A stretch of 64,000 nt of DNA from Macrostomum lignano (Eukaryota): contig NIVC01000657.1 of the NCBI GenBank assembly GCA_002269645.1, forward strand, positions 124,001-188,000, read 5' to 3'. Shown here piece by piece: positions 13,101-48,680 of the stretch. Made by a program: the position numbers and the translations under genes. The notes under the pieces are model-generated. The model did no database searches, was not told where the DNA came from, and worked only from the letters and a program-made list of their open reading frames with translations. How positions within the stretch are numbered: position 1 is the stretch's first letter; each line of letters opens with the position of its first letter.

Positions 13101-13811
13101 GGAGGAGGCGCCAGTGGATGACGGCGTGCTGCGCCTGCGGAGCCGTTCAGTTTTTAGCGCGATTCGAATCGCTTCGGTGGACACGGATCTCTTTCTAGTT
13201 GCATCGTCAGACTCGGCAAGACTTTCAATATCAGCATCGTCTAGTTCGTTAGCTTCGCCTTTATCATTATCGTCAAAGAGTATTGAATTGTGCTCTTCAA
13301 TTACCTCTTCTTCTTCTTCTTCTCCGGCCATGGTTTCAATAAACTCTTCAGGATCTGGCTCCTCCGGTTGATCAGCATTATCATTGCCATCCCCAAGGCT
13401 TGGCGGATCAATATAATCAACCGGCGGTTTAGCCTGAACAATGCGAATGAAATCGTTAGATACTGAACACTTGCCAATTGGAGCTGGTACGCGTTCGATA
13501 ATAGCCTGCTGCGAGTGGAAGATGTACTGCGAACTATCGGCAGAATCATCGCCCTCTGGCAGAGGCAGGGAGCGCAATTCGTTAAGTAACCGTCTGGTTA
13601 ATTCGCCAATAGACAGCAGGATGTGATTGTCTCTATAGGCCGACACGATATCGGCAAATATGTCCAGCTGAGGCCGGCAATTCTTCTCTAGGCGATTGAG
13701 AAATGCAGCATTGCGCATAGTAGATTGTAATACTTTCTCCGATCGGTCTACTCCAAAGAGAAAGTCTAGGCATTCGCGCATTATGCGCATCGCGTCTTTT
13801 CTAGTTGCCAT
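10191..13811 (-). CDS. Uncharacterised 1206-aa acidic/low-complexity protein with a K/E/R-rich coiled-coil repeat block
   Basis: 3.6-kb uninterrupted ATG-started ORF, mostly non-repetitive. It has an upstream CAG acceptor and a U-rich downstream region. No family recognised. Confidence 0.85.
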   Translation of the reverse strand: MATRKDAMRIMRECLDFLFGVDRSEKVLQSTMRNAAFLNRLEKNCRPQLDIFADIVSAYRDNHILLSIGELTRRLLNELRSLPLPEGDDSADSSQYIFHSQQAIIERVPAPIGKCSVSNDFIRIVQAKPPVDYIDPPSLGDGNDNADQPEEPDPEEFIETMAGEEEEEEVIEEHNSILFDDNDKGEANELDDADIESLAESDDATRKRSVSTEAIRIALKTERLRRRSTPSSTGASSAVSSRSGQSPADVQQPRRAQLNLPVPVDLNDAEIAVSLPAEQQHQNQLRDSEPGIRLSKSFSLSPAFGNVFSDNDFDDLDFGSPQFEPGAPLAATAADGGSKLSRLRLQQQEEQQQQQEAETRRREAEQERVKAEKDAERIRQEAELEEKRKKEAVEFEARQQKANDREKRKAEKEVERKKKEAKLEAKRKQKEAELEAERERKEAERRQKEAELEAERERKEAELEAERERKEAERRHKEAELEAERERQEAERKQKEELEAERERQEAERRKEKELEAEQERREAERKQKEELEAERERQEAERRKEKELEAEQERREAERKQKEDELEAKRRQKEVELEAKRRQKEVELEAKREKKEAKLRRQKAELEAEQERQETERKEKENKLKADRKNNKAELEAEQESKYAKKQRVVRNSRRNRVDDDELEAEQKETSSKPIPGRKGRQLRSKPEIKNDAKAANAETKSCARKRRAPEEPGFLGSLRRKHKVDLDAETSNASSEEGDESNSEQLNDGAVSEPDSDRQRPPTPQPGASKSQRCSSRQGRLSSPPQSPTFFTADVAATAAAPDEFAELDRLVRERGRCLFDEEVHDDKEVPEAVVEDKASAPELVIELQQPSDEAKEALVPPVSNNKSKKQLEKKPETEDNNNRPARRAAAQRANVSLSAMSMSQAIDQFNAGLGLGVAGDEHNEKCRRPAPTMLSKKSKITKTTRQPESQEDKEEQQQQQPPQESALDADKSASPVWRFNDAQSSTSPRKFFSTTFADRRRSEAKRLLTAKEQFGYKLYHLNRPANPSFNAVLKPTHNLTDPVMSKVAGQKSRKRKPQHKNSVTFCAEEDEEEADLFAEVRPRKTARQTQQRQQQTPKMRKQLDYLTMMQEDNDADADEDRRMLMNIEDDDDEVDNVDRGRRPRQSRFAGLPKPDAGTLFRMVRFRRKLVNLLDQLAAEYPQVAEAIGQIEKGEVRSVDEVVL

Positions 13812-23395: not shown

Positions 23396-26300
23396 CTAGC
23401 CGAAAAAGTGTGGCTCAAAAATCTTAGCCAAAGTGACAAACAGTGACGTGATAGATGCCAAGCAGCCGAAGCCGCAGATAGTGGCATCTTTAATCAGCAC
23501 TAAGCGCTGCTGGGTGCTGGCCGGCCGATGCCAAACAAGCCGCAGATGAGCGGCGCAGGGCAGCACAAAAGCCAAGAAGATTGACCCGACAGCGCCAATA
23601 AACGAGCTGACGTAAGCGTACAGTTTGCGCAATAGTATAGCCATGGCTAACTGGCACATTACAATGCCAAATCTGAGACAGTTTCTCATCCAAGTTGGGG
23701 CGCCATCGGGAGTTGAAGTGGACAGCAGAGCGTGAGCATCATTGGCGGCATTGTTATTGGGTGAGTCGGAATCCAGCTGAACAGAAGCAGACGCGATCAG
23801 GGCTTCTTGCTCTTCGGGAGAGACAGAGTCTGTAGAGTTGGGTTATTTGTGCGTTTGTTTGGCTTATTTTCCATACAAAAAATTGTCTTCACTGTGCTAC
23901 TTATCACAGGGTTTAAAAGTAGTGCAGTTAGGATTTTTTAAAATTACCGTTAATTTCCGTGTATTCTACTTGTTTATTAATATCATAACAAGTAGTGCAG
24001 TGAAGTCAGGAGTTTTTCAAATTTGTGAATGGCTCATTTTATGCTAAGGAAAATTGAAAAGAAACTCGACAAAGCTACTAATATCTGTCCCGATATGAGT
24101 AGTGCTTGTTAGATTTTGTCGGAATTTTCCCAGAAACAAGTGTTAACACACAAGTGTGACAGGAAAAAATTGCTTTAGATTTTGGTGTTTGACAATTTGT
24201 TTCTATTAATAAGCATGGTAGACAGAATGGAATTTACCTCTATAACCTGCCCCAGTGGGTAAAAATTCCATTGCTTACTGGAGATTATTAAGAATTCGTT
24301 TGAATTGGCTCTATACACCTCTGCATAGCTGCACACACAGACACGTACATTTGCACGACTCGAAAAATTTATTAAATAGATTGGAAAATATTTCAAGGCT
24401 ACTACACGCCCACATATTGCCTAGGCCTGGGCCAGGTTGGAAAAATTAATTCTGTGCTACCTAATATTGCTGCTTCTATAGTGCAGATACAATCTGATGA
24501 CACAGATATGTACTTAATAACGATGAACACTGCACAACATGTTAAATACATCCTTAAGTGACAACGCTAATAACTTTTTGTAAACAGTTGTTATATTGTA
24601 AACTCAACTTAATAAAAAAATCTAGAAAAGATTAATCGAATTCAAATTATATAAACTCCGCGCTTGACTTATTTAAAAAAGCTTCAATTTTGTTTAGCTA
24701 ATTTTTAGCAATCTGCTTATTTGTATTGATCGCTTGCAACAATCAATACCAATATTGAGCAGGAAATTTACGATTCAAAGCGAAGGGTGTTAGCTTTTAT
24801 TACGTGCCTTTGCCCAACTACTGACCTGTTCTAGACGTGTCTGTCTAGGTCTACCTGTCTGTCCAGATCATCTACCTGTCTGTCTAGATCATCTACCTGT
24901 CTGTCCAGATCATCTACCTGTCTGTCTAGATCATCTACCTGTCTGTCCAGATTATCTACCTGTATGTCTAGATCATCTAGCTGTCTGTCCAGATCATCTA
25001 CCTGTCTGTCCAGATCATCTAGCTGTCTGTCTAGATCATCTACCTGTCTGTCCAGATCATCTAGCTGTCTGTCCAGATCATCTAGCTGTCTGTCTAGGTC
25101 TGTGTCCTAGTGCCTGTCTCAATAATCCTGTCTGTGTGTCCTAGTGCCTGTCTCAATAATCCTGTCTGTGTGTCCTAGTGCCTGTCTCAATAATCCCGTC
25201 TGTGTGTCCTAGTGCCTGTCTCAATAATCCCGTCTGTGTGTCCTAGTGCCTGTCTCAATAATCCCGTCTGTGTGTCCTAGTGCCTGTCTCAATAATCCTG
25301 TCCGTGTGTCCTAGTGCCTGTCTCAATAATCCTGTCTGTGTGTCCTAGTGCCTGTCTCAATAATCCCGTCTGTGTGTCCTAGTGCCTGTCTCAATAATCC
25401 TGTCCGTGTGTCCTAGTGCCTGTCTCAATAATCCCGTCTGTGTGTCCTAGTGCCTGTCTCAATAATCCTGTCCGTGTGTCCTAGTGCCTGTCTCAATAAT
25501 CCTGTCCGTGTGTCCTAGTGCCTGTCTCAATAATCCTGTCTGTGTGTCCTAGTGCCTGTCTCAATAATCCTGTCTGTGTGTCCTAGTGCCTGTCTCAATA
25601 ATCCCGTCTGTGTCCTAGTGTCACTCTGATTTTAAAGTGCACATGAAACAGGCTATGCCAGTCAGAAGCTGTTAAAACATCGCAGACATCAAGAAGATCA
25701 GCTGCAGATTTTAGTTTAGAGGTTAAAAAAGCATTTAATTAGCTAAACTTTACACACAATCACACAAAGAAAAAATAATTGAGAATTGAAGCAAAACTCT
25801 GTTCTCTTAGAAGGCCGATAGATCCGCTGATAATAACGATGTACTCCAGTTGTGTAGGTAAATAGTATTAGAGAGTTTCAATTAAAAAAGGATTAAAAAC
25901 AGCCTACATTATTAATTATGCATTTGTTATAAAAAGGAAGCATTGACAACCCTTAAAAATTTCTAAAAAGCAACGCTTGGTTCTGCATTCGCATCACCTA
26001 TTATTAGAAAACTGCGTACTGGAAGGAAGTTAATTTTTAAAATTATTAGCTACACAAGACTGCATTAATAGAAAAAAGATAAAAAATAGAAGGTATATGC
26101 ACACATATACCGGGCTCATCATAATTAACTGAGGAACCATTGACGCTTGCCGATGTTCGATCTGGTGGGTGTGATATAATTATGCAGCGGCAGAGAATTA
26201 ATATTCATAAATATATTCTGACGATAAAAAGGCTATATGAAAAACTACCAAATTAACAGAAATACACCAAAATTTGGACTATTGGTAAAATCCATGACTA

Positions 26301-29300
26301 ATAAAAATAATAGGCATTAACAAGAAGCCTTCGGCGACATTGTCCCGCAACCAGCGTTGAAGCAATTCAGCACATTCCTTCCTTGCTAATTTTTCTCCCA
26401 TTTTTTGGTCATTTACTTCTACCATTGGTAGAAATAAACTGTTAGGTTGAATTACATCATCGCCCATTAAGACAGTCTTCTCAACACAAGTCTCCACCTG
26501 TAGCAACTCACGGCTTGAGCATCCTCTCCACCTGTAGCAACTCACTTCTCCCACGGCTTGAGCATCCTCTCCACCTGTAGCAACTCACTTCTTCCACTGC
26601 TTGAGCATCCCTCTGATTGAATTAACATGACATCAAAAGTCCACCGTATTTATAATTTGAAAAAGCATCAACCATTTACCAAAAACAGTCAATAGTTGAA
26701 CACAGAAATAAACTCACATCTAGCCAAGAAGAGTTTCTCAGTCATCTGAATAACCGGATAAATCTGCAGTGGGAAAGTGAAGATCACTCCCAGGATGAGT
26801 GTAGCATCCAGTATGACAACGAACAGAGATTGGGTAGGCAGATTTTGCACCACAATCTGTCTGGTGTCCTGGCCATAACGCAGGTAACCAATAGTGCCAA
26901 CACCGCCAAGTATAGCTGTCACAACCACTAGGGAGCCGCGTAGGAACGAGCGAAAATTATGTCGGTTGTCTTCCATGCTGGATTCAATTGGGATTACCTG
27001 TTGGGATGTTGAAATTTGACATCTTTTAAGTTGGAATCATGGTGCAATTTGACAGGCCAATTGAGCGCCACAACTGAGACTTCAGTGTGATTTTAGCACC
27101 ACAACTGAGACTTTAGTGCCAATTAAGCGCCACAACTGATATTTTAGCGCCAATAAGTGCCACAAAAAATGAGATTTTAGCGCCAATTAAGCGCCAGAAC
27201 TGATATTTTAGCGCCAATAAGTGCCACAAAAAATGAGATTTTAGCGCCAATTTAGCGCCACAACTGAGACTTCAGTGTGATTTTAGCACCACAACTGAGA
27301 CTTTAGCACCAATTAAGCGCCAGAACTGATATTTTAGCGCCAATAAGTGCCACAAAAATGAGACTTCAGCGCCAATTTAGCGCCACAACTGAGACTTCAG
27401 TGTGATTTTAGCACCACAACTGAGACTTTAGCACCAATTAAGCGCCAGAACTGATATTTTAGCGCCAATAAGTGCCACAAAAAAAGAGATTTTAGCGCCA
27501 ATTTAGCGCCACAACTGAGACTTTAACGCCAATTTAGCGCCACAACTGAGACTTCAGTGCCAATTTAGCGCCACAACTGAGACTTTAACGCCAATTTAGC
27601 GCCACAACTGAGACTTCAGTGCCAATTTAGCGCCATAACTGAGACTTCAGCGCCAATTAGCACCACAACAACGGAGAATTTAGCGCAAATTCAGCGCCAC
27701 AACTGAGACATTAGCGCTAATTTAGTGTCACAACGGATTTATGTTGTGATTCTTTAATATTTTCTGTTAAACCAAATGGTTTTCTATAGGTCACAGTACT
27801 CGTATTATGCAGTAAATATTTAATCACACAGCCACTGACTCCGTTAATAAACCTTAAGTAAAGGTCTCCAAGAACTAATTCTCCAGGGCCGTTCTGGCTC
27901 GTGAAACAGATAAAATAAAATTCGACCCCTGCTGAGAAAAGTAGGTTTCAAACTCTCTTACTTACACAAACTTTATAGATAAGATTTAAAGCAGATCTGA
28001 CCTCTTTCGAATCTTTCCTCAACAAGCATTTGGTTCACAGACATGGCAAGCATTCACAGTTATAGTAGAACGCTGCACGCTAACACTATATATTCTACAA
28101 CATTACTTTCTGGACTTTCGACTTTACAAACCTCTGTATGTCAAAATGAGAAAAATACTTGAATTTCAACCTACAAGAATGGAAAATATTTTTTGCCAGG
28201 GAGCAGTGTCCTTCCATCACAATCACAATGCACTTCCTTTTTGCCGATGCATGCATGCTAAAAGTGCACATTGTTGATACTGGGGTTTCGATTTAAAGTA
28301 CTAAAGCACTAAAGCACTAAAGTATTTAAGTACTAAAGTACTAGTTCACTATAGTACAACTGAAGTACTTAAGTACTAAAGTACTAATTCACTATAGTAC
28401 AACTGAAGTACTTAAGTACTAAAGTACTAATTCACTAAAGTACTAATGCACTAAAGTACTAATGCACTAAAGTACTAATGCACTAAAGTACTAATGCACT
28501 AAAGTACTAATGCACTAAAGTACTAATGCACTAAAGTACTAATGCACTAAAGTACTAATGCACTAAATGCACTAAAGTATTAATGCACTAAAGTACTAAT
28601 GCACTAAAGTACTAATGGACTTAAGTACTAATGCACTAAAGTACTAATGCACTAAAGTACAAGCTATAAAAGAGGATAGAGCTGTTGCTTACCGTTCCAA
28701 TCCCTTCGTAGGACACGGCCACCATCCCAATATACACTGGCAGAGTGGCACCTGTAGCCTGTTGAACAGTGTCGCTAACAGAGAACTGATGCAGCATAAC
28801 GGCTAGGACAGCTACAACTCCGGCACAGATGCTGATATTAGCTACAACACTAACGCTGCCCATACTGCGAATATTGCGAATCAAAGCGAAGCCAAGAAAC
28901 AGAGGCAACGGCGCGCAAACTAGAAGCCATAGAGGCGGCACAGACCAAGTTGGAGTCTCCGTAAATCCGTCCAAATCGCTGTTTTGCTGCTCCGCCTGAG
29001 TGTGATAATCGTAAGCCTGCGGGATTTGTTGGGAGATTGGGAATATCATTTTTGGGGGGTTAGAGTGCAACAGTAACTTATGCCTTATGCCTGAAGGGTT
29101 TTCGTACGAATCACAGGCATGAGGGCCAAGCCTAAGGCACAGAGAGAGTACATGCCTGACGATAAGAAAGTCAAGGAGGGCCGCTGTACACATTCGGTAT
29201 GTCAGGAGTCAGCAGAATGGGCAGAATTGCTTCATCGCCGCTTGTGGGACGGGACATACATGCCCAACACCCGACCGACCCAGCTGATTCGGCCGGGTGG

Positions 29301-31537
29301 CGAGAGGTCTGGCCAAGGTAAGTCGCAAAAATGCTGACCCGAAAAAGACTAGTACTAATTAGATGACGAGGCATTTAGCCTTAGTAATACAGTTAAAGTT
29401 ACTCCAGCCGGTTACCCAAAATTACGTTAATTTTGCTTCAGTTTCTTTTATAGGTAAATCGCATTTTTGGTCAAAAAGAAAGTCGCACGGCTGGGTGAAC
29501 TTTCGAAGTTGGGCATGTATGTTATGTGACGAGGTCAGACGTAGCCCTCGCCTTTGCCCTTCTAGGAATAAATGTGATTCTGATTAAAATACCCAGCTGC
29601 ATTATACAACAAGGACGCCAAAAGACTCTCACCTGAAACGCGACCGTATCGGTGTCATTTCTACCCAAAGACAGCACCTGATGCAGAGTATTGCCAATAA
29701 ATATAAAATAATTAATGCAGAAGCCGAATTGAGTAATAAACAGAGACGCATTGACTAGCCACAGGCCGGGCCGACCGTACGTGAACTTGGCAATGTCCCC
29801 TAGCGTGACAATCCGATGCAGAGCGTCCGTCTGTCTGCGCTGATGACTAGCATCGTCTGCTGCTCCGTCTGAACCATTATTACTCGAATTATGATTATTG
29901 TTGTTATTACTATTACTATTATTGGTGTTAGTAGCAGACGGAGAGGCCCCTGGTCCCAATGCATCAGGACAAAAGCCGTCGTTATAGTAATACGGACTAG
30001 AATTATTATTATTACTGTTACTATTTTGGCCAATAGTGCCATTGCCATCCAGAGAAGACTCGGATCCGGAATCTTCATCATTAACTAACGATTCAACCAT
30101 CAGCTGTTTGCAGGTAACTATCAGGTAGCAGCAGTGATCAGTTAGTACGGCTATGATCATTAGTAGAGCGAAGCCGAGCTGGCAGAGTTAATAAAGAAGT
30201 TGACAGGTTTGTTTGTGTTGCTACTGACTGACAGAACTTTTATAAAGTTTATTGTGTCCTATGAGCCATTGTTACCCCTTGCTACCTACCCTGGTTCCTC
30301 TATGATGGGCCATTGTTACCCTCACCTGGTTCCTCTATGATGGGCCATTGTTACCCTCACCTGGTTCCTCTATGATGGGCCATTGTTACCCTCACCTGGT
30401 TCCTCTATGATGGGCCATTGTTACCCTCACCTGGTTCCTCTATGATGGGCCATTGTTACCCTCACCTGGTTCCTCTATGATGGGCCATTGTTACCCTCAC
30501 CTGGTTCCTCTATGATGGGCCATTGTAACCCTCACCTGGTTCCTCTATGAAGGGCCATTGTTACCTCACCTGGTTCCTCTATGAAAGGCCATTGTTACCC
30601 TCACCTGGTTCCTCTATGATGGGCCATTGTTACCCTCACCTGGTTCCTCTATGATGGGCCATTGTTACCCTCACCTGGTTCCTCTATGATGGGCCATTGT
30701 TACCCTCACCTGGTTCCTCTATGATGGGCCATTGTTACCCTCACCTGGTTCCTCTATGATGGGCCATTGTAACCCTCACCTGGTTCCTCTATGAAGGGCC
30801 ATTGTTACCTCACCTGGTTCCTCTATGAAAGGCCATTGTTACCTCACCTGGTTCCACTATGAAGGGCCATTGTTACCATCACCAGATTCCTCTATGATGG
30901 GCCATTGTTACCCTCACCTGGTTCCTCTATGATGGGCCATTGTAACCCTCACCTGGTTCCTCTATGAAGGGCCATTGTAACCCTCACCTGGTTCCTCTAT
31001 GAAGGGCCATTGTTACCTCACCTGGTTCCTCTATGAAAGGCCATTGTTACCTCACCTGGTTCCACTATGAAGGGCCATTGTTACCATCACCAGATTCCTC
31101 TATGATGGGCCATTGTTACCCTCACCTGGTTCCTCTATGATGGGCCATTGTAACCCTCACCTGGTTCCTCTATGAAGGGCCATTGTAACCCTCACCTGGT
31201 TCCTCTATGAAGGGCCATTGTTACCTCACCTGGTTCCTCTATGAAAGGCCATTGTTACCTCACCTGGTTCCTCTACGATGGGCAATTGTTACCCCACCTA
31301 GTTCCTCTATGAAGGGCCATTGTTACCACCTGGGTCCTTTTATTCTATGAGCCATGGTTACTACATTTCAGTCCTTTTATTAACCATTAATACTAATAAC
31401 AATAACAAAAAAGTCTTAATAATACTTACAGCAAGACCAGACTGACTAAAGGCAAATGGCATCGACAAATAGTTGGAGCCAATAAATGCCTTGAATAAGT
31501 TGGCAAAGTCTGATACATGCTGCAGCGCTGAAACCAT
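23396..31537 (-). CDS. SLC36/AAAP-family amino acid transporter, 5 exons (31537-31430, 30178-29633, 29016-28693, 26997-26718, 23829-23396), ~563 aa
   Basis: TM1 FANLFKAFIGSNYLSMPFAF, TM2 LTDHCCYLIVTC, FITQFGFCINYFIF, YEGIGT|VIPIESSM, FTFPLQIYPV and SFIGAVGSIFLAFVLP. All four introns are GT-AG with matching phases (0,0,0,1). An extra upstream exon is possible. Confidence 0.88.
24838..25620. repeat. Compound minisatellite: 21-bp units then 34-bp units (transporter intron 4)
   Basis: ATCTACCTGTCTGTCTAGATC followed by GTGTCCTAGTGCCTGTCTCAATAATCCTGTCTGT. Confidence 0.93.
27060..27725. repeat. Degenerate ~21-23-bp minisatellite with higher-order repeats (intron 3)
   Basis: TTAGCGCCACAACTGAGACT-type units. 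Confidence 0.85.
28295..28660. repeat. 16-bp minisatellite (AAAGTACTAATGCACT)n (intron 3)
   Basis: Direct periodicity. Confidence 0.92.
29255..29521. mobile_element. 267-bp MITE (copy A) of the CATACATG-TIR family carrying a 28S rRNA-like segment
   Basis: Perfect 14-bp TIRs CATACATGCCCAAC (29255-29268) and GTTGGGCATGTATG (29508-29521). Its ends are homologous to the element at 34202-36395. No clean TSD. Confidence 0.85.
30262..31330. repeat. 35-bp minisatellite (transporter intron 1)
   Basis: CATTGTTACCCTCACCTGGTTCCTCTATGATGGGC units. Confidence 0.95.
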
Positions 31538-31713
31538 TGTATCACTGTTTTAGGCATGAAATTCCAACTGGCAGTTTTGTAGTCAAGCATGCAAGAGAAT
31601 GAAATATATACAAATTATAAAAACTAAGACAAAATAACATTTATCAATTAAGTTAGATAGTTTTTACAATTATTTATTGTTTATTGTTTCAATCTATTAT
31701 ACTCGTAGTAAAA

Positions 31714-32499
31714 GGGCCATTCCATATAATTATGGTTGTAACATGACAGACTATTCTTACTTATAAAATGAAATCTAATAATAGAATATACTAAACCAAT
31801 ATTTTGAATGAAAGATTATTTTGTCAAGAATACGTTTATAAAGTTTCATATAGATATCATCATTAGTATAGATGCTATTAAACCTTGAATGGCACTTATG
31901 GTCGTAACAACAGGATTTTTGACACAGAAACTAAAAGGTAAAAGTCTTATAATATTTTTCATTTTTGATATTTTGCAATAATTTTTTTAAAATTTGACTA
32001 AGAACATCTTTAGAAGTCATACTCTTTTATTAGAATATATAAACTCAAAAAGGCAACAAAGATACAAAAGAAAAGGCAGCCTTATGGTTGTAACATTATG
32101 GTCGTAACATATTTTTTTCTGTCAATTCAGTAACTTTGAAGTAGTAATATATTAAAAATATAATAGATTATATGGTTGCTAATGTTTTTTTCTGATGATG
32201 CAAGTACTATAATTTTATATATAGTTTGTTTTAACTTTCTAAAGCTTTCTATTTGTTTTTAAAAGGTACATAAACTTAATGATGTCTTTTGCTTAGAAAA
32301 TGTCCAATTTTTTACAAAAATAACTTTTTGCCAATTGATAACATACTAATACAACATTTTATCATTTATTTATTCTTAGATTGTATACATTACATACAAA
32401 AAAGATTTTGTAAAAAAAATTGGCTGATAAGGCAATGACAAACAAAAATATTGACTTTTTTCTATTTTCCAAATATGTCTATCTTATATGGAATGGGCC
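31714..32499. mobile_element. AT-rich 786-bp MITE, possibly PIF/Harbinger-like
   Basis: 16-bp TIRs GGGCCATTCCATATAA and TTATATGGAATGGGCC (1 mismatch), AAA on both flanks, and internal TTATGGTYGTAACA repeats. Confidence 0.6.
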
Positions 32500-32964
32500 A
32501 AAAGCATCTTTTAATCTAGACAAATGAGTTAAAAATTTTTAACAAAATTTAAATTTATATCTTGGAATTATGCTAAAAAATGTATACTGCATGTTTTAAG
32601 GATATTTTCTGTATAAACAATATTACAAATAAAACTAAACTACAATAAACAAAATAATTATAAATTGAATATTTTTAAATAGCTCCTATCACTAAAATGA
32701 ACACTTGTAGAATCTTTTATTTTTTAGTAAAGCCAAAACAAAGTGTGGTATATTTATCATAAAAACAACTTGTCACTATAACAATATATATACTAGGCCC
32801 TATATTTGTGTGGCATGTCTTCTAGAGACCCCGTGACTTGGCCTTGTCAGCCTTGTAGACTATAGAATGTATTCAAGAATATTCTGTGATTATAGCAAAG
32901 ACCATCTTCTTTACTATATAGGGTGCTAGGCCCTAATCAATTCAATGAAAAATAAATTTGATTT

Positions 32965-33330
32965 GAAAGATTTATAATAGACAAAGGGCCTATCAACTTA
33001 AGCTTATAGAGTGGAGCCTAAATAATATGTATACAAATGATTATGTCATTCTTGTGATAATTACAATAACACTAAAAAGCAGCTTTTGGCAAAAAAGCAA
33101 CAAATATTGGACTCAAGACAACAAGAAAGGGGATAATTAGCAATTATTATATCAACTTAAGCTTATAAAGTAAAGTCCCTAATTATCCTTTTGTTTGTTC
33201 TCCTCTATCCCAAGTCCAATTTTTGTTGCTTTTTTGTCAAAGCCTGCTTCTTAGTGTCATTGTGAGCTGAATGATGTATCACTCCACTTTATGAGCCTAA
33301 GTTGATGGGTCCTTTATTGACAATCTAGTC
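32965..33330. mobile_element. Fold-back element with ~150-175-bp degenerate inverted arms and a ~40-bp spacer
   Basis: CCTATCAACTTAAGCTTATAGAGTGGAG...AAAAAAGCAACAAATATTGGACT...GGATAATTAG pairs with the reverse complement of 33178-33330. Confidence 0.7.
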
Positions 33331-34789
33331 AATTTTGTAACAATGAAAGAAGAAAAATGAAGGAAGAAAGGAAAGAAAGCTTGAAATTTATGCTTAAAAA
33401 TTAACCCCTAGTATAGTGTAAGGGGGTTTTGGTGTTTTAGTTTTGGTTTACAATCATTTAGATGTAAGCAATACATGTAAATGATAATGAACCAAAGCTA
33501 GCCATATATTAAAATAGTGATTGATTTCAGATAGAGCTTGTAAAACACTAAAACCCCGTTACACACATAGGCCCTACACTAGCTTCAGTTCAGGATCATT
33601 TATATATATATATATAAACTGAAGTGGATATATAGGATTGTCTTCTTGGATTCATTTTTGGAAATTGAATTCATGCACTAATGCCTTTACACACACGCTA
33701 GCTTTGGTTCATGATCATTTACATGTAGGCCCTATTGCTTCTGTTTAAATGATTGGAAACCAAAGTGGATATATAGGATCCTTGTCATCGCCATGCCATG
33801 AAAGAAACCATGCCATTTGTTGGCTATTCTGTTCAGTTTTTTCTAATGTAACAAATAAGCTCAGTTTAACCATTTTTGTTTATTTCAAGCAAGCTATGAT
33901 CATTTATATGAAAAATTACATGGGCATTGTGACCCAAAATGTGGGTGGAAAAATGATGGTAAACTGAAGGAATGCCATCCTAGCCTAGTGTTCTAAAAAT
34001 TAAGGCTAGGCAGTAGGCCTAGGCCTAATTAGTACTTTCTTTTAGTTTATACATTTATTTAATACTTTTTTATTTTATAGGTCTATATAATTGGAATCCT
34101 GACAAGCTATTATGACTATATTACCAAAGTAGGCTAGGGGCCTATATCTATATAAATATAACCCATTAAATATTAGGGCCTAGAAACTAGACTTTGCTAC
34201 TCATACATGCGCAACTTCTGAAATTACGCTGGCCGTGCGACTTAGTTTTCGATAAAAAATGCGACTTACCTATGAAAGAGCCAAGCAAAAACTTTAGGTA
34301 AACGGCAGGAGTAACTATGACCATAATTTAAAGCTAATTGCCTCGCCAGCTAATTAGTGCTGCGTGCAGATTTCGCGTTTTTATAACAGCTAATCAGTAT
34401 GTCATCTAGTGGCGGCATGAAGCAATTAGTAAATTGTCAGTACAGTGTAGTGAGCATACTACAAAAGTCATGATTCATGAATGTCCAGAAGTAAGTGAAG
34501 TGAATACAGTGTGACCTATAGCTCAAGAACGATTTGCTAGACGATTTGGCATGGAAGATGAGAGCCCTGATTCAGATGGCTCATCAGATGCAGAATACGA
34601 ATCCAGTAGAGATACAAGCTGTGAAAACCCACAGATTTTTAAACCACTGAATTCTAATTCCCGGAACTATTTTTGCATAGATTCTAAATTTGAAGTCATG
34701 CTCAAACAAAAACTTGTTAACAGTTAGGAAAAAGGCAAAGATGGGAGCAATGCATGTTAAACTAAGATTTGAGGCCTTTGCAAATTCTC

Positions 34790-35533
34790 TCCATTCCTCA
34801 ATCTTCTCATCCTCTTTTTCTTCTCTCTCTCATCCCTTATCCCTTCTCTCTTTCCTCTCCTCTCCTATCTCTTCTGTCTCCTCTCTACATTCTTATCTCT
34901 CCTCTCGTCTCTCTCCATTCCACTCTACTCTCTCATCTTATCTTCCCTCTCGTCTCTCTCCACTCTACTCTCTCATCTTATCTCTCCTCTCTTTTCTACT
35001 CTCTCATCTCTCCTCTCTTCACTCTCCTCTCATCTCCTCTTTATCCTCTCTTCTCTCATCTACTCTCTCCTCTTTCCTCTTTCCTCTCTTCTGATCTCAT
35101 CCATCATCTTTTCTTTCCTCTTTCCTCTCATCTCCTCTTCTCTCTCATCTCTTTTTCCTCCCTCAGCTTTTCTCTCCTTTTCTATCTTTTCTCCCATCGC
35201 ATCGCTCGCCTCTCCTCTGTTTGCTTATCTCTAATCTTCTATTCCCTCTACTTTGAAGTAAGAAAATATGCACATATTTTTGCTGAAGATAAGAGGAGAG
35301 AAGAGGGCATTGAGGAGAAAGGGTAGAGAGAAAGGGGAGAGAGAGAGAGGAGAGTAAAAATGAGAGAGAGAGAGAGGGAAAAGGGGGAGAGAGAGAAGAG
35401 GGGAGGCAAGGTAGAGAAGAAGAGAGAGATGAGAGTTGAAGAGACACCAACCTTGCTGGTTAGGAAGTTTCAAAGAACCCGAGGGTGAGGGCCAGATAGA
35501 GGGGCTTCGCGAGCCGGAGTTTGCCAACCCCTG
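34790..35533 (-). mobile_element. One-ended hAT MITE with an expanded CT/GA tract, nested inside element B
   Basis: The minus strand starts CAGGGGTTGGCAAACT and contains CCCTCGGGTTCTTTGAAACTTC, shared with the copies at 40.2 and 42.8 kb. The second TIR was not found. Confidence 0.7.
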
Positions 35534-35689
35534 CTCCAGAGTTTAAGAAATCAATGGGAAACTGTTGACGCGGGCTTCTGATTTCAAAGATCTTGTCTGT
35601 GGTTGAAGGCTTCTATTCTGTTTTTGCTCTCCTGCCACACTTGCACCTACTACCCCCTGATTGCCTCTGATTGTGACTTACTTCCCTCT

Positions 35690-36200
35690 TATTGCGACTT
35701 AGTTGCTTCTTTTTGCGACTTACCTAATCCTTTTTGCGACTTACCTAACCCTTTTGCGACTTACCTAATCCTTTTGCGACTTACCTAACCCTTTTGCGAC
35801 TTACCTAATCCTTTTGCGACTTAGCTGATCCTTTTGCGACTTACCTGATTCTTTTTGCGACTTACCTAATCCTTTTTGCGACTTACCTAATCCTTTTGCG
35901 ACTTAGCTGATCCTTTTGCGACTTACCTGATTCTTTTTGCGACTTACCTGATCCTTTTTGCGACTTACCTGATCCTTTTTGCGACTTACCTAACCCTTTT
36001 GCGACTTACCTAATCCTTTTGCGACTTACCTAACCCTTTTGCGACTTACCTGATCCTTTTTGCGACTTAGTTTGCTTCTTTTGCGACTTACCTGATTCCT
36101 GTTGCGACTTACCTGATCCTTTTTGCGACTTAGTTTGCTTCTTTTGCGACTTACCTGATCCTTTTTGCGATCAACTTACCTGATTATTTTTACAACTTAG
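35690..36200. repeat. 20-22-bp subterminal array (GCGACTTACCTRAYCCTTTT)n
   Basis: About 24 units; the core GCGACTTACC is also the conserved subterminal motif of copies A, B and C. Confidence 0.92.
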
Positions 36201-36412
36201 TTTGCTTCTTTTGCGAATTGTTTTTCTTTTGCTTCACCATTTTCCCTGAACTGCTCTTTCTTTCGCTTTCCTCTTGCCTTTCTTGGTTCTTGTGTTTTTC
36301 TGTTTTTGGTTGACTCAATTTTGCGACTTACCCCTGGTCAGCCACGATTTACGGTGGCCGGATCGGCCAGGTCGGCCAGCAGTTGCGCATGTATGTTGCT
36401 ACTTATATAATA

Positions 36413-36780
36413 TAAATATGTACAATTGCTGGCTGACATGGCCAATCTAGCCACTAGGCCTATAAATTATGATAGGCCTAGACCAGGGGTAAGTCGCAAA
36501 AATGCCCATCCAAAAGAATACAGACATACCTAGTACTAATTAGATAGGGCATTTAGCCTTGATAAGATAGGGCTTAGCTTAGTCATAGTTAAGCGGCTAA
36601 GCGGCAGGCTTAGGCCTACTCTTTGACTTCTTGTTTAGGACTAGTTAGGAGTTTTGCTTTAGGTTAGAATTTTTGCTTTAGGGACCTAAGGTTTCTTTCA
36701 TAGGTAAGTCACATTTTTGGTCAATCAAAACATAAGTTGCATGGCCATTGTAAATCAGGGAGGGGGGTTGCACATAGATG
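36413..36780. mobile_element. Decayed MITE (copy C) of the CATACATG-TIR family
   Basis: Retains GGTAAGTCGCAAAAATG, the 28S-like segment and TAGGTAAGTCACATTTTTGG in the same order as copy A; TIRs are degenerate. Confidence 0.75.
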
Positions 36781-38343
36781 GTATAATAACACTTCTCTAT
36801 GGCCTAACATTTCTCTAATTAACTTCAAATTTCAAACTTGTGCAGCCAAATACATTGCTAGAAAACACTTTAAATTAAATACCACTAGGCCTAATATCTT
36901 CTAACCTTGTAAAAAACCTTTACAGCTAAAAATAAAAATTGAACTAGACCTAGTGTGCTAAAATCAGAAAATTCAAAAGGTGTTAAGAATAAGACTTGAT
37001 GTACTGTCTTTAATACTGTAAGCACACTTTAAATGTTCGATAGTTAAATTGAAATAAATAGGACCAAGGCCAAGCCCAAGGGCAAAGATTCAAGGCTACA
37101 GCGTACACGGTCATCATGGTCGCTAATAAGCGCGTTCAAACGTGTCAAACAATTGTTTTAAATGAATTACATTGCCATTACACAAAGTCACAAAGACATC
37201 TATAGCCAAGGACTGATTCTATGAGTTGCATTCTTGAAATCAAAGTGGTAAACCGTGAAAATTAAAAAATCACAAGTTCATAAGCTAAGCCAAGTTCATA
37301 TAATAAAAATAAGTACATTTTTTGAATGCGTGCTGCTCAATTTTTTTGTTTAGTATTTTTTATTAAAAGTAAAACATGTTTCCATTTTTTATTTATTTGT
37401 TTGCTAGTACCTTGATTTTTGTTAAATACTTAAATAGGTTTTGTTAAAGTGTGCTTAAATTATAAATATTTAAATTGTGTTTTCCACTCCAACTGGTGGA
37501 ACGGACTTCATGTGCAAAGTTCACCGTGAGCTGTTTGGTCAGTAGTAATTTAGGAAATAAATCACGAATGTTGTGAACTAGGAGGAACATGATCTAGTCA
37601 ACTAATTAGTTGTCCAACTACTTGTTTATCTGAAGGAAGGCATGGAGCCGAATATGTATTGCCTGTTTAGTTGATATACATGTATGTACATGCAAGTATA
37701 TTACTTTGTAACTCTGCAACTTTTTTGTCTTTATATAGACTATTCTGGCAGCTGTACATTTTGATACAAGTAAATGATATGGATACATACGAATGTCAGT
37801 GAATTGTTGATTAAAGTTTTAGTTTTTTGATTGATGAAATATTTACCCAGTGGATATTTTTGAGTGCTCAGCTGTTCTGATAAACCTGACATGTAAGAAC
37901 TTCAAAGCACAGACCAAAAGAAAACATACATGTACGAGTAGCTACATATAGTAACTTTACGCTCAAACCGAATGATGTAGAAATAGTGCTTTTAGAACCT
38001 GGATAATACAGTACGAGTACATGTAAATTAAGATTTTTAATCTTATTTAAGATAGGCCCTTGAACGAGCGTACACTGTAAGTCGTATTGAAGTATGCATT
38101 ACATTTTTTGATTTCGCAACCTGCCAATCAAGTGACACAATACTGGCAAGTAAGGAAGTTAACGTTAGTAAAAATGCTGATAATGTAAATGCCTAACTAG
38201 TGTATTTAGCTTCATCATTGAAACTTATAAATAACGTTATACATAGCTACCACACAGACGCATTACATGAACCTGATGTTTAACAACATTAAAATAAATA
38301 AAAAGCAACAAACAAACCGCTAAGTTAAAATTAATAGCAACCA

Positions 38344-41300
38344 TCACTGCCCAGAGGTAAGAGTTACCAGTAGATCTTCAGCATCATCTGGCAGAGGCGG
38401 CAACAGAGGCTGCTGTTGCTGCTGCTGGGTTGGTATTAAATTCGAAGCCAATTCTTCATCATCAACATCTTCGTCGTCTTCCTCATCCAAATCGTCATCG
38501 TCGCCCTCTTCATCTAGTTCGGCATCGTCAATGGCGGTTTCGTTGGCTGTGGCTGCAGCGGCAGAATCAGCAGCGGTGATGCCAGTCGAAGACGCGGAGG
38601 CGGCGCTGTCAGCGGAGGCGGCCAGGACCGCACGCGGCAGCAAGCGCCTCACGTGCTCTCTGAAAAGCGTCGCGTTTAATATCTTGCATCAATCCGCTAT
38701 AGCTATACTCAGTGCAAAATAGATGAGATTATGCTCAGATTATGCGGATCAGCTTGTGTGAATGTCAACTTAAGCTAAGGACCCGAGTGACTGCACAATC
38801 GATAACTTTCTGGACCCAGTTGACTAGAAACGACGAGACCCGGTCCCTTTCCTTAGTAAGGCCTTAGTATCTAGTCGTTGCCTTGAAGGAGCTTCCATTC
38901 CATGAGTCCCAAGTTAAACATTGAATCCCTTCTTGAGTACTTTCCTTGGGTTCCTAAAGTATTTTGAACTTCATTCCAACGCTTAAATTGACATCCGCTT
39001 TTACAGACTCGAAATTTTGCAAGTGACCTGTAAGACGTCTTTGATGACGTGCAATTCTGAGCGTCAGCAAGGGTATCAACTCGAGACTGGATTTGGCTTA
39101 CTTTTCGGGATAATTGAATTGTTTCTAGTAATCTTCCTTTTCTGGATTCTTACATGGAACTCTGCAGGGTGGATTTTGACCCTAACATCAAACCGAATGT
39201 CTGGATTCTGACCCGGATACCAAACTTAATGTCTGGATTCTGACCCGGACACCAAGCTTAATGTCTAAATTCTGACCCTGACATTAAACCAAATGTCTGG
39301 ATTCTGACCCTGACACCAAACTTAATGTCTGGATTCTGACCCTGACATCAAACCGAATGTCTGGATTCTGACCCGGATACCAAACTTAATGTCTGGATTC
39401 TGACCCGGAAATCAAACCGAATGTCTGGATTCTGACCCGGACACCAAGCTTAATGTCTGGATTCTGACCCGGACACCAAGCTTAATGTCTGGATTCTGAC
39501 CCGGACACCAAACTTAATGTCTGGATTCTGACCCGGACATCAAACCGAATGTCTGGATTCTGACCCTGACATCAAACCGAATGTCTGGATTCTGACCCTG
39601 ACATCAAACCGAATGTCTGGATTCTGACCCTGACATCAAACCGAATGTCTGGATTCTGACCCTGACATCAAACCGAATGTCTGGATTCTGACCCTGACAT
39701 CAAACCGAATGTCTGGATTCTGACCCTGACATCAAACCGAATGTCTGGATTCTGACCTTGACATTTTATCTGCAAGGTACACGTAAAGACGCATAAAGAC
39801 AATCCAACGAAGAATAATATATAAATAAATATGCTACACAACGTTATTCAAAGACTGATAAGTTTACATCGTATTAACATCGTATTACCTGGTCAGCTGT
39901 CGAAATTCTGCCATATTTGACTCCGAGTACCAACCGAAGGTGTCGTGACAAACCGGTTGAATTGGTGCAGCTGCGACGCGTTCGGCAATGGACGGCACGT
40001 GAATGTGGCAGAGCTGCAGGCACAGCTGGCCAACCCGGGGCAGCCGGTCCGGCTCCAGTGAGAACTCCGAACCGGCCGACACCGAGCGGCCGTGACGACG
40101 AATTTGACGTACGCGGACGTCCAGGCACTGGTAGATCGCAGCACCTTCAGACGGGTGATGAGTTGAGACTTCAAGTTGAATTGAAACTGGTCAAAAGTTG
40201 ACAGTAGAAATCTGTTCAGATCCTTCACTTACAGCAGGGATCGGCAAACTTTTTCCCTTCAGGGCCGCATAGAGAACCCAGCGCATGACTGCAGGCCAGA
40301 GGGGGGAGAGGAGAAGGAACAGAAGAAGAGAACTAGGAGAAATGAGAGGTGAGGTAATATAGGAAGAGAGTTGAGAGGAGAGGAGAGAGGAGAGGGGAGG
40401 AGAAAGAGAAGAGAAGGAGAAGAGAGAGGAGTAAAAAGGAGAGGAAAGGAGAAGAGAAAGGTGAGAGAAGAAACAAACTTTGAGCGGGAGGGATTGTGAA
40501 GTTTTAAAGAACCCGAGGGCCGGATGTGGCCCGCGGGCCCGAGTTTGCCGACCCATGACTTACAGGGGGGGGGCATCACAAACCCGAAAAATCACAACTC
40601 CGAAATTGATAGCAACACACATCATAAACCCGAAAAATCATAACTCCGAAATTGATAGCAACACACATCATAAACCCGAAAAATCATAACTCCGAAATTG
40701 ATAGCAACACACATCATAAACCCGAAAAATCATAACTCCGAAATTGATAGCAACACACATCATAAACCCGAAAAATCACAACTCCGAAATTGATAGCAAC
40801 ACACATCATAAACCCGAAAAATCACAACTCCGAAATTGATAGCAACACACATCATAAACCCGAAAAATCACAACTCCGAAATTGATAGCAACACACATCA
40901 TAAACCCGAAAAATCATAACTCCGAAATTGATAGCAACACACATCATAAACCCGAAAAATCACAACTCCGAAATTGATAGCAACACACATCATAAACCCG
41001 AAAAATCACAACTCCGAAATTGATAGCAACACACATCATAAACCCGAAAAATCACAACTCCGAAATTGATAGCAACGCACATGACCAAACTAGTGTTGAA
41101 CATTGCTAGAACTTTCGGAGTTATGATATTTCGGGTTAGTGATATTTTGGGTTTATGATGGAAAGTGCTTTCGGAGGTGTGATTTTTCGGGTTTATGATG
41201 GCGACCACTTACAGGGTCCTTACTAGCTTTCCTAAATGCTTCAGGGGGTCCTCAATTAATCCTTTCAGATCGTTTCCCATCTTACTGTTAGAAGCTACTT

Positions 41301-43542
41301 CTCAAATCTTTTCAATGGTCCCCGCTACCATCAGGTCCTATAATGGACGCTGTTTAGTCACCAGATCCCACCCCAAGAAAACAATGAGAAGCCCACCTGA
41401 CTCAACAATGGGATTATACCCAAAGCGCAGCCACAGATGATGCCAAGGCCCTCTGTACATGTGATAGGCCTTAGCCTTGATCAGCAGTTTAGCCTGGCTC
41501 CTATTAGCAATATCGCGTAGGCAATGAGACACGTAGGCAATCGATATAATGGGAGTTTCAGCTAAAAGCTGGTCTAAACGTTCCAGCACGCGCTGCGATC
41601 GAAGGTCTCTCAGCCTGGTCACTTGGGCTTCAATCTCAGGCGTGGGGCCGGTGGGTGCGCCAGACTTGCGCAGATCCGCCAGAGTGGTCGACACTGTCAG
41701 ACCGCAGCGACTCTTTCTAGTGAACATGCGCGGTCCAGCGACGTCAGGATCGGCAACGGAGGCGGCGGCGGCGGCCGCTTGAGGTCCAGAATCCTCGGGA
41801 TCGAAGCGCATCGGCTCCCAGAGTCGATAGTCGCTTTGCGCGTCCGGCCGCGATAACGGCATAGTGACGAGGTGCAGCGGTACATCATCGCGACAGAACC
41901 AGTCTTCTACCTGGCGGTTTTTGGGGATGAGGGATTAAATTATTTTTGAGCTGATCGGCTCCACTGCGGAAATCCAAATGTGCCATTTTGAAACACGATT
42001 GTGCCATTTTTTAATCCAAATGTGCCATTTTTCCATCAGGGTGTGCCCTTTTTAAATCCACATGTACCATTTTGAAACACGATGTGCCATTTTTAAATCT
42101 AAATGTGCCATTTTGAAACACGATGTACCATTTTTAAATCTAAATGTGCCATTTTGAAACACGATGTGCCATTTTTAAATCTAAATGTGCCATTTTGAAA
42201 CACGATGTACCATTTTTAAATCTAAATGTGCCATTTTGAAACACGATGTGCCATTTTTAAATCTAAATGTGCCATTTTGAAACACGATTGCGCCATTTTT
42301 AAATATAAATGTGCCATTTTGAAACACGATTGCGCCATTTTTAAATCCAAATTTGCCATTTATTCATTAGGGTGTGCCACTTTTAAATCCAAATGTGCCA
42401 TTTTGAAGCACGTTTGTGCCACTTTTAAATCCAAATGTGCCATTTTGAAATCCAAATGTGCCATTTTGAAGCACGTTTGTGCCACTTTTAAATCCAAATG
42501 TGTCATTTTTAAAACGAAAGTGAAAACAACAATAAATCTTGTCACATGAGCACACAGCGCACCTGATCAAACGGTCTCGAAGGTACCAAATCGTCGTACA
42601 GGTCGCGATACTGTTCGAGATTTGGCCCGGACCGAATAAATGTCAGATATTGCAAATCTGCCAGACCATTGAATTCGTAGGTGCAGCCGCTTTGACCAAG
42701 GCATTCGATTTGAAAGCGTTCATCGCCTGTGACTTTGTGCCGCTGTCTGCAGTGAACGGTTTATGCACTCTTTATCAAGGAGGGCTTACAAACCAATGCC
42801 CGCAAAGCCTCTCTATATCCGGCCCTCGGGTTCTTTAAAACTTCACAATCTCTCCCGCTCAAAGCTTGTGTCTCTTCTTAGCTTTCTTCTCTCACCTTTC
42901 TCTTCTTCTCTTCTCTCTTCTCCTCTCCTCCACTCCTCTTCTCTCCTCTCCCTCTTCTCTTCTCTTTTCTTCGCTCCTCTTCACTCGTCTTCTCTTTACT
43001 CCTCTCACTTCTCCTATTTCATCTCCCCTTTCCTCTCCTTTCGTCAACTCTCTTCCTTTATTCCCTCACCTCTCATTTTTCCTAGTTCTCTTCTCTGTCC
43101 CCTCCCCTATTTTTAGCACAATTTAATAAATCTGTTGCTAAAATATTAAAAAAGCAGAAAAATGCAAAATTTTTTGAAAAAAACGAGATAAAGCATGGCA
43201 TGCGCACTATTTAAAAAAGCACTCGAGCTACCCATTGAAAAAAAATTTATAACCGCACCTGACTACTCGCAGTACAAAAGCAGCTCGGCTAGTTACGGGA
43301 TCTGCGACAGCCACTCTAGGCAGAGCATCCTCTGGATTGAATTGCATCTGCAGTCTCAGCTGGTGCTGCTGCTGCTGCTGAAGCCGCTGTTGCTGTTGCT
43401 GCTGCAATTGAGCAGCAAAAGACTCTGCGAGTTTGTCCAGCCCGCCAAGCATCCGGATCGCTCGATCTTCATTGCGAACTATGCCGGGAAATTCCACGGC
43501 TAATAGTTGCCGATTGGATAGGGGCACCTCCTGCTGCTGCGA
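38344..43542 (-). CDS. GTF3C5: TFIIIC subunit 5 (tau95/Tfc1 homologue), 5 exons (43542-43259, 42746-42563, 41910-41397, 40144-39889, 38659-38344); initiator ATG not present in these exons
   Basis: LLAVEFPGIV...MLGG, YEFNGLADLQYL, YRGPWHHLWLRFGYNP, AIYQCLDVRVR, QLCLQLCHI...GW and an acidic C-tail. All introns are GT-AG with consistent phases (2,0,1,2). 517 codons plus Met. Confidence 0.9.
39185..39762. repeat. 32-bp minisatellite (GTF3C5 intron 4)
   Basis: TCTGGATTCTGACCCTGACATCAAACCGAATG units. Confidence 0.93.
40235..40557. mobile_element. 323-bp hAT MITE with a GA-rich core
   Basis: TIRs CAGGGATCGGCAAACT and AGTTTGCCGACCCATG, 8-bp TSD ACTTACAG, and a CGGCCCGCGGGCC-type subterminal motif typical of hAT MITEs. 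Confidence 0.9.
40566..41206. mobile_element. ~640-bp TIR element (Merlin- or Mutator-like) containing a 46-bp tandem array derived from its own end
   Basis: Ends GG..CATCACAAACCCGAAAAATCAC and GTGATTTTTCGGGTTTATGATGGCGACC. TSD ACTTACAG(GG), 8-10 bp. About 11 units of AAACCCGAAAAATCATAACTCCGAAATTGATAGCAACACACATCAT. Confidence 0.8.
41975..42512. repeat. ~20/21-bp dimeric (41-bp) minisatellite (GTF3C5 intron 2)
   Basis: TGTGCCATTTTGAAACACGA and TGTGCCATTTTTAAATCTAAA units. Confidence 0.9.
42780..43115 (+). mobile_element. Degenerate copy of the CT-rich hAT MITE (GTF3C5 intron 1)
   Basis: About 50 nt (ATCCGGCCCTCGGGTTCTTTAAAACTTCACAATCTCTCCCGCTCAAAG) is the near-exact reverse complement of 40476-40525. 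Confidence 0.75.
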
Positions 43543-47880: not shown

Positions 47881-48680
47881 GGGGAGTGAAACTGCCTTCA
47901 GACTGGTCATTCGGGGAGTGAAACTGCCTTCAGACTGGTCATTCGGGGAGTGAAACTGCCTTCAGACTGGTCATTCGGGGAGTGAAACTGCCTTCAGACT
48001 GGTCATTCGGGGAGTGAAACTGCCTTCAGACTGGTCATTCGGGGAGTGAAACTACCTTCAGACTGGTCATTCGGGGAGTGAAACTGCCTTCAGATTGGTC
48101 ATTCGGGGAGTGAAACTGCCTTCAGACTGGTCATTCGGGGAGTAAAACTGCCTTCAGACTGGTCATTCGGGGAGTGAAACTGCCTTCAGACTGGTCATTC
48201 GGGGAGTGAAACTACCTTCAGACTGGTCATTCGGGAGTGAAACTGCCTTCAGACTGGTCATTCGGGAGTGAAACTACCTTCAGACTGGTCATTCGGGGAG
48301 TGAAACTACCTTCAGACTGGTCATTCGGGGAGTGAAACTGCCTTCAGACTGGTCATTCGGGGAGTGAAACTACCATCAGACTGGTCATTCGGGGAGTGAA
48401 ACTGCCTTCAGACTGGTCATTCGGGGAGTGAAAATACCCTCTTCAGGTGTCTTTCAGAGTGGCCCTAGCTTCAGGTGTCCTTCAGAGAGTGGAGCCCTAC
48501 CTTCAGAGAGTGGAGCCCTACCTTCAGAGAGTGAAGCCCTACCTTCAGAGAGTGGAGCCCTACATTCAGAGAGTGGAGCCCTACCTTCAGAGAGTGGAGC
48601 CCTACATTCAGAGAGTGGAGCCCTACATTCAGAGAGTGGAGCCCTACATTCAGATGTACTTTAGAGAGTGGGGCCTTACC
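47881..48680. repeat. Compound 32-bp then 21-bp minisatellite upstream of IFT52
   Basis: GGGGAGTGAAACTGCCTTCAGACTGGTCATTC followed by TTCAGAGAGTGGAGCCCTACC. Confidence 0.93.

Follow-up and report, generated by a model that had tools for sequence, protein, structure and literature searches.

A fragment of the 28S rRNA gene carried inside a family of non-autonomous DNA transposons in Macrostomum lignano

Results

In a 64-kb stretch of the genome of Macrostomum lignano DV1 (GCA_002269645.1, contig NIVC01000657.1:124001-188000; the whole stretch is called the window here, and positions are counted from its first base), three elements with terminal inverted repeats (TIRs), named A, B and C, each hold an internal piece derived from the 28S ribosomal RNA gene. 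A, B and C belong to one family of non-autonomous TIR transposons, of which a fourth and more decayed segment, D, is probably a further member. The explanation that we favour, with a probability of roughly 0.75, is that a non-autonomous hAT-like family captured the 28S sequence neutrally and has since inherited it as a decaying passenger.

The three elements have in common a 14-bp TIR (CATACATGCSCAAC) together with subterminal repeats of the motif AAGTCGCA, of which the window has 29 occurrences where 1.5 would be expected, all of them inside A, B or C. Copy A is a MITE (miniature inverted-repeat transposable element) of 267 bp (29255-29521, minus strand; E=3e-77 with the nhmmer family model), with TIRs at 29255-29268 and 29508-29521. 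Copy B has a length of 2194 bp (34202-36395, plus strand), and its TIRs at 34202-34215 and 36382-36395 show 0 mismatches. Copy C is an old element of 369 bp with decayed TIRs (36412-36780, minus strand; E=4e-73 with the same model). Over the family, the TIRs are 14-15 bp long. The 14-mer CATACATGCGCAAC is perfect at 34202 and, inverted, at 36395 in B, has one mismatch at 29255 and, inverted, at 29521 in A, and has three mismatches at 36780 in C. The TIRs of A and B match each other at 13/14 positions and are perfect within each element. Both TIRs of A are CATACATGCCCAAC and both TIRs of B are CATACATGCGCAAC, a single G/C difference being repeated at both ends, and these matched variants suggest two subfamilies. 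Read on the 28S sense strand, the elements run from the 5' TIR through ~60-80 nt with two TGCGACTT motifs to the 28S piece, followed by a short spacer, a 3' subterminal region with TTTTTGCGACTTACC and the 3' TIR.

Copy B is bounded by an 8-bp target-site duplication, TTGCTACT, with identical 8-mers at 34194-34201 and 36396-36403 (both plus strand), the right one of which directly adjoins the duplication of C. The latter (36404-36411 and 36781-36788, TATTATAC/TATTATAT) agrees at 7/8 positions and is the same in the orthologue of C. In the flanks of A, no clear 8-bp target-site duplication was visible. The assembly contains two paralogous versions of the window region, on NIVC01002162.1 and NIVC01000654.1, which are either post-duplication homeologs or uncollapsed haplotypes; the paralogous contigs were obtained through cluster members of IFT52, the G protein-coupled receptor (GPCR) and the methyltransferase. 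On NIVC01002162.1 (locus L093) the site of B is empty: C is immediately followed by a single target, AATAGCAA, and then by the left-flank sequence of B. When the flanks of B were joined with one copy of the target, they aligned end to end with this contig (169/187, with a gap-free junction). Because the unoccupied site is kept in NIVC01002162.1, B inserted after the paralogous contigs had diverged. The family is mobile, and one of its members, B, inserted recently. In the sequence-only reading of this DNA, the elements had been described as a family of TIR DNA transposons, and this description was borne out by the TIRs, the target-site duplications and the empty site of B.

C and D are older than the split of the paralogous contigs, and the presence of old (D and C) and young (B) members points to a long period of family activity. 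The orthologue of C in L093 carries a 150-bp insert, and C is half deleted in the other paralogous contig: of the further paralogous-contig loci (L094-L096), L094 has, from position 21526 (window ~33430-36640), a deletion of ~1 kb that takes this half of C with its 28S remnant, and the target site of B. No family copies beyond the three to four known ones were found with the nhmmer family model in the ~190 kb of M. lignano DNA surveyed, most of which is paralogous to the window; the paralogous loci L097 and L098 end at window-equivalent 26.9 and 27.2 kb, short of the homeologous site of A.

The origin of the internal piece was assessed with cmscan and the Rfam model RF02543 (LSU_rRNA_eukarya) of the large subunit (LSU) rRNA. 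With a stretch of 131 nt as the query in each case, A matched at 26.7 bits (E=4.4e-5; model positions 2206-2310) and B at 21.6 bits (E=1.1e-3; model positions 2208-2313), scores that lie under the 50-bit Rfam gathering score and are seen only when short stretches are searched. Scans of the whole window at the gathering threshold and of 8-kb pieces against Rfam gave no LSU match. The matching segments are located at 29352-29460 (minus strand) in A, where the piece is the best preserved of the four, and at 34270-34364 (plus strand) in B. In local alignments to the Rfam LSU consensus, scores of 70, 66, 47 and 26 were obtained for A, B, D and C, respectively, as compared with a maximum of 25.5 ± 1.9 (largest value 31) in 40 first-order Markov simulations of the 64-kb window. 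On this comparison, the similarity of A, B and D to 28S is far beyond chance. The piece comprises ~105 nt, from about CUGAAUGUCAAACUGAAG to UAAUUAGUGACGCG, or LSU model positions ~2206-2313, the part of 28S in which the R2/I-PpoI/Pokey site lies. Since the LSU homology ends at ~2206 and ~2313 and the gathering score is not reached, the piece has the properties of neither a genuine LSU gene nor an rDNA pseudogene.

The earlier description had put the LSU match at ~60 nt in all three elements. The homology holds, for A and B by cmscan, and the length is really ~105 nt. The sequence details quoted there were all correct: B matches GGTAAACGGCGGGAGTAACTATGAC at 24/25 positions (34297-34321), the 28S 23-mer AAATGCCTCGTCATCTAATTAGT is present without mismatch in A (29354-29376, minus strand), and C retains TAACTATGACT and ATCTAATTAGT. 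The lack of any significant LSU hit, named there as an outcome that would speak against the idea, did not occur, given the E values of A and B. For C the claim stands through homology to A and fails on direct comparison: its 28S remnant (36533-36610, minus strand) has a disrupted left arm and ~12 extra nt in the centre, including a repeated CTAAG, and C alone scored at background level against LSU (26) and had no cmscan match. As C is homologous to A over its whole length, its 28S remnant is present by descent.

Segment D (57657-57752, minus strand) has unrecognisable ends, and cmscan with the LSU model gave no match for D alone. It matches positions 101-169 of the nhmmer family model (E=0.0017), has AAGCAAAA and AATTTAAAG in common with B, and is found in both paralogous contigs with 90.5% identity. 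Based on these similarities, D is probably an ancient family member. Relative to the TIRs, A, B and C all hold the 28S piece at one position and in one orientation, and its core is also present in D. Moreover, A, B and C have derived states relative to 28S in common, namely GCTAA where 28S has GCCAA and the loss of 3 nt at GG|TAG. The common position, orientation and derived changes argue for a single capture.

We next consider the part of the piece that corresponds to the insertion site. Two arms, GGGTAAACGGCGGGAGTAACTATGAC and AAATGCCTCGTCATCTAATTAGT, enclose a 15-nt centre, TCTCTTAAGGTAGCC, in which the site of I-PpoI, the nick site of R2 and the TTAA of Pokey all lie. In A, 45/49 arm positions match the Rfam consensus versus 7/15 positions in the centre (Fisher p=4e-4), and in B these numbers are 44/49 and 8/15 (p=4e-3). 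In every copy the 28S piece has diverged most in the 15-nt core CTCTCTTAAGGTAGC, and no element copy was found within 3 mismatches of this I-PpoI 15-mer. The TAG of the R2 nick site GG|TAGC is deleted in A, B and C, and the Pokey TTAA is kept only in B and D. Hence, an intact core, with CTCTCTTAA|GGTAGC for I-PpoI, GG|TAGC for the R2 nick and TTAA for Pokey, was not observed. No insertion was present at the target point in A, B, C or D, nor in the orthologues of C and D. The earlier proposal that the elements mimic the 28S target is not supported by these results: a core matching at 7-8/15 positions, a deleted TAG, no copy within 3 mismatches and no insertions, including the R2 insertions that had been suggested as a check. 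The window has no near-matches to the I-PpoI 15-mer other than seven with 2-3 mismatches in a 21-bp tandem repeat (48479-48654); these are chance matches multiplied by the repeat and have no relation to the elements.

Conservation of the piece was compared with that of its surroundings in four copies and their orthologues. Between D and its orthologue in L095, ~7/70 positions (~10%) differ in the 28S part versus ~8% in the flanks. In the comparison of C with its L093 orthologue the right arm is identical, and the centre and left arm differ heavily. Between A and B, identity is 81% and 87% in the 28S arms, 82% in the 5' subterminal region and 67% in the 3' subterminal region. These comparisons give no sign of constraint on the 28S piece after insertion. 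It had been suggested that the 28S part might be more conserved than the rest of the element, and this was not the case, either in the D pair (~10% vs ~8%) or in the arms of A and B, which are no better kept than the 5' subterminal region. Copy B combines flawless TIRs and motifs with a 28S piece that has nonetheless drifted by 10-20% and has a scrambled centre; since this young copy has a drifted piece, the active lineage evidently needs no intact 28S site. A fragment limited to a few copies and decaying at the neutral rate had also been named as a result that would undermine the proposal. The decay applies, with the D pair diverging like its flanks, and the copy number of only three to four is that of ~190 kb.

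The assignment of the family to hAT-like elements is plausible but unproven. It is favoured by the 8-bp target-site duplications, perfect in B (TTGCTACT) and 7/8 in C, by the short TIRs and by subterminal repeats near both ends. P and Merlin elements likewise make 8-bp duplications. The ends of the family read CATAC and do not fit the hAT terminal consensus 5'-YARNG, and TTGCTACT and ATATAATA fit only one of the two positions of the nTnnnnAn target preference (T at position 2), on that strand only. No transposase domain was detected in the open reading frames (ORFs) of the window or in the paralogous loci obtained. The hAT-like label of the sequence-only reading is thus supported by the duplication, the TIRs and the subterminal repeats, and is weakened by the terminal misfit and the missing transposase.

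Copy B is non-coding. Outside low-complexity sequence its ORFs do not exceed 58 aa, and its extra length consists of non-coding sequence, a CT/GA-rich inverted repeat and a 21-bp tandem array (35688-36170, plus strand; 23.5 units with TGCGACTT; period 21 and score 626 in Tandem Repeats Finder (TRF)). A comparison of the 58-aa stretch, part of a 70-aa frame at 34515-34724, with 1.8 billion representative proteins yielded no real relatives. The sole match of the 70-aa frame was an unrelated repeat protein, apparently bacterial, and not a partner transposase. Metagenome matches to the family 17-mer GGTAAGTCGCAAAAATG on 91 contigs were dismissed as chance, as TIRs, homology to the family and an LSU piece were all lacking; among the 91 contigs are a plant transposon family (Pfam Transposase_32) and apparent annelid-associated repeats. 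Scans of viral contigs for the 28S 23-mer and the family 17-mer found nothing.

Discussion

In the explanation that we favour, a transposase encoded elsewhere would move these non-autonomous copies. The founder of the family would have taken up ~105 nt of 28S rDNA once, between its 5' and 3' subterminal regions, through what we infer to have been filler or template-switch DNA in the repair of an excision gap, or some other modular reshuffling. After this capture, the piece would have been inherited as a passenger and left to decay. Because its core is destroyed, it would not work as a target site, and the 28S features that the copies have in common would go back to shared ancestry rather than to selection acting on the 28S part. 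Neutral capture had been listed among several possible roles in the sequence-only reading, and of these it fits best, since the 28S part of the D pair has diverged as fast as its flanks. In a review of rDNA modules in transposons, such modules were considered to be mostly of no benefit to the element (PMC10946416).

Several points weigh against neutral capture. No autonomous partner, which would define the superfamily, was found in the window or the paralogous loci obtained, A has no recognisable target-site duplication, and the mechanism of capture is itself inferred. The arms of A and B are strikingly better kept relative to 28S than the centre, a contrast that could be produced by selection on the arms or by gene conversion from rDNA. 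In D, the oldest copy, only the 28S part still aligns to the family, and the conservation profile is that of four copies plus orthologues rather than of the whole family. More generally, the arm/centre pattern could go back to an old scar that the rDNA unit bore when it was copied, to a tendency of an AT-rich stretch to acquire indels, to conversion from rDNA, or to selection that acts on the arms.

The alternative that survives best, although we consider it unlikely, is a direct link to rDNA, in which copies recombine with, convert or home to the rDNA array, or are relics of an ancestor that occupied the 28S hot spot and left a scar. The significantly greater damage of the centre compared with the arms agrees with this idea, and the ~12 extra nt of C with their repeated CTAAG would fit a scar at an rDNA insertion hot spot. 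Pokey provides a precedent as a DNA transposon tied to the same 28S site. However, all copies found lie in ordinary genic or intergenic DNA and not in rDNA, the target of B (TTGCTACT) has no similarity to 28S, and 105 nt at 80-90% identity make a poor recombination substrate. Much of the damage to the centre also post-dates the capture, because A, B, C and D each have a different centre.

About as unlikely as such a link is a related reading in which the arms are kept by selection or by repeated conversion from rDNA. The arms could, for example, serve for the docking of an R2-type protein or a nucleolar factor, or the family could be the relic of a second lineage at the 28S hot spot after Pokey, with the centre as its scar. 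If a link with rDNA did preserve the arms, the 28S hot spot would have a second kind of DNA transposon tied to it, a reading that the evidence does not favour.

A role as a source of small RNAs seems improbable to us. According to this idea, transcribed copies would yield sense or antisense small RNAs that match 28S, or would draw in the machinery of PIWI-interacting RNAs (piRNAs) or small interfering RNAs (siRNAs). The host of copy A is an Aa_trans transporter gene (window 23399-30187, minus strand): A lies ~110 nt into one of its introns, with exons on both sides, and is oriented as this gene. Being intronic and in sense with its host gene, it is transcribed as part of the pre-mRNA, and its exact identity to 28S over 23 nt would suit the proposal. 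Against this, a perfect stretch of small-RNA length is present in A only, and the 28S part shows no conservation signal.

It is still more doubtful that the piece is a decoy or landing pad, kept because R2, I-PpoI-like or Pokey-like elements bind or cut it, with the outcome that such elements are diverted from rDNA or are offered safe sites. Both arms, which correspond to the sequences on either side of the R2 site, show 90-92% identity to 28S in A and B, and R2 lineages do occur in flatworms (PMC5035012). The cleavage and recognition core is nevertheless destroyed in all copies, no insertion is found at the site in the four copies or in orthologues, and the D orthologous pair has no constraint in its 28S part. 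Moreover, two other R2 families of flatworms, those of Schmidtea mediterranea and Clonorchis sinensis, are not target-specific (PMC5035012). Finally, a chance similarity or independent rDNA pseudogene scraps near inverted repeats, for which one could cite that C and D alone escape the LSU covariance model, is already refuted by the scores of A (70) and B (66) against a simulated maximum of 31, by their matches to the LSU model and by the position, orientation and derived changes common to A, B and C.

Neutral capture by a MITE family can be set beside several known systems. Like the M. lignano family, hAT MITEs such as Mar of Drosophila have short TIRs, 8-bp duplications, subterminal repeats and no coding sequence. 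Internally deleted Ds-type elements carry filler DNA, and their internal region is thus of foreign origin, as it is here. The M. lignano family differs from hAT MITEs in that no transposase was found for it and in its CATAC end, which misfits YARNG. Among known transposons with rDNA modules are short interspersed nuclear elements (SINEs) and Cassandra with 5S promoters, SINE28 with 28S sequence, and Pokey with repeats of the intergenic spacer (IGS) (PMC10946416). As in these, similarity to an rRNA gene lies inside the M. lignano elements and in the same place in the different members.

The closest parallel in terms of the 28S region is Pokey with its MITEs (mPok), piggyBac elements of Daphnia that likewise have an internal rDNA-derived module and are associated with the same region (PMC10946416, PMC3849761). 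The module of Pokey consists of IGS-derived repeats, whereas that of the M. lignano family is 28S gene sequence; Pokey inserts at the 28S TTAA, whereas the M. lignano copies occupy ordinary DNA, where their duplication has 8 bp and is no TTAA, and the two belong to different superfamilies. The body of the mammalian SINE28 also holds 28S-derived sequence (PMC4994717), but SINE28 is a retrotransposed SINE, while the M. lignano element is a cut-and-paste TIR element that carries the 28S piece as a passenger in its interior and not as a head or promoter. In ray-finned fish, an R2 lineage has a 28S-like 3' untranslated region taken from beside the R2 site (PMC5035012). These fish R2 elements are autonomous retrotransposons without long terminal repeats, and their 28S-like piece accompanies a shift of the insertion site and is plausibly functional, in contrast to the non-coding M. 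lignano element with no sign of use. SINE3 and the Cassandra and Ajax terminal-repeat retrotransposons in miniature (TRIMs) resemble the M. lignano family in having an rDNA module in every member of a non-autonomous family (PMC10946416). Their 5S modules keep a working RNA polymerase III promoter and are conserved, whereas the 28S piece decays and has no known promoter role.

In the literature searched, no report was found of a 28S fragment in a hAT-type MITE, nor of this family in Macrostomum, in line with the earlier remark that no hAT-like element with a built-in 28S piece was known. The list of rDNA-module transposons in PMC10946416 contains no cut-and-paste MITE that carries part of the 28S gene body, and this flatworm model species adds a case to it. 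In practice, scattered 28S-like matches can mislead the annotation of rDNA, fluorescence in situ hybridization (FISH) or the design of probes, screens for contamination and the mapping of small RNAs in M. lignano. Because the divergence of the paralogous contigs in this neopolyploid genome was followed by activity of the family, its insertions are useful as subgenome markers.

Additional observations

The 8-bp duplications of B and C abut (36396-36411), so that the young copy sits exactly 8 bp from the end of its old relative. The position of B beside C may hint at insertion next to related ends. The 21-bp array of B is built from the family's 3' subterminal motif TTTTTGCGACTTACC, and a putative transposase-binding motif would thereby have been expanded into a minisatellite. 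Inside B, the long CT-rich/GA-rich inverted repeat (34805-35420) yields spurious matches to microRNA models. Similar CT/GA-rich repeats are present in introns of the Tau95 gene (40373-40465 and 42898-43005), and the interior of B at 35400-35690 weakly resembles the CT/GA regions of Tau95 introns on the paralogous contigs.

Right beside D, outside its 28S piece, both paralogous contigs have a tRNA-derived SINE that ends in a poly-A tail and has a target-site duplication of ~13 bp (L095 12611-12976; L096 12610-18922); the window lacks this SINE. The SINE in L096 carries a nested 5.9-kb TIR element (CCATGGTCAGGAAGG...) with an 8-bp duplication, TGCCTATG, and several broken ORFs. This element was rejected as the autonomous partner, as it has different TIRs and no Pfam match.

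With regard to the host gene of A, the annotated 563-aa Aa_trans product is present on the paralogous contigs, and the apparent C-terminal exon at 23399-23842 had no match in the protein collection. For the GPCR exon, a search of proteins gave a single match. A single-exon ORF of 1206 aa (10191-13811, minus strand) has a long E/R/K-rich repeat region (EAERERKEAE...) and is without a Pfam match. The window is otherwise gene-dense, with genes for LIM, protein-lysine methyltransferase, DUF167, Aa_trans transporter, TFIIIC Tau95, IFT52, FSH1 and GPCR proteins. Its IFT52 exon has 98% identity to an M. lignano protein, and the contig that belongs to this protein agrees at 100% with window positions 35423-57818. 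Minisatellite arrays make up one third of it (21.2 of 64 kb masked by TRF), and an array with a period of 16-46 bp is present in nearly every intron or intergenic stretch.

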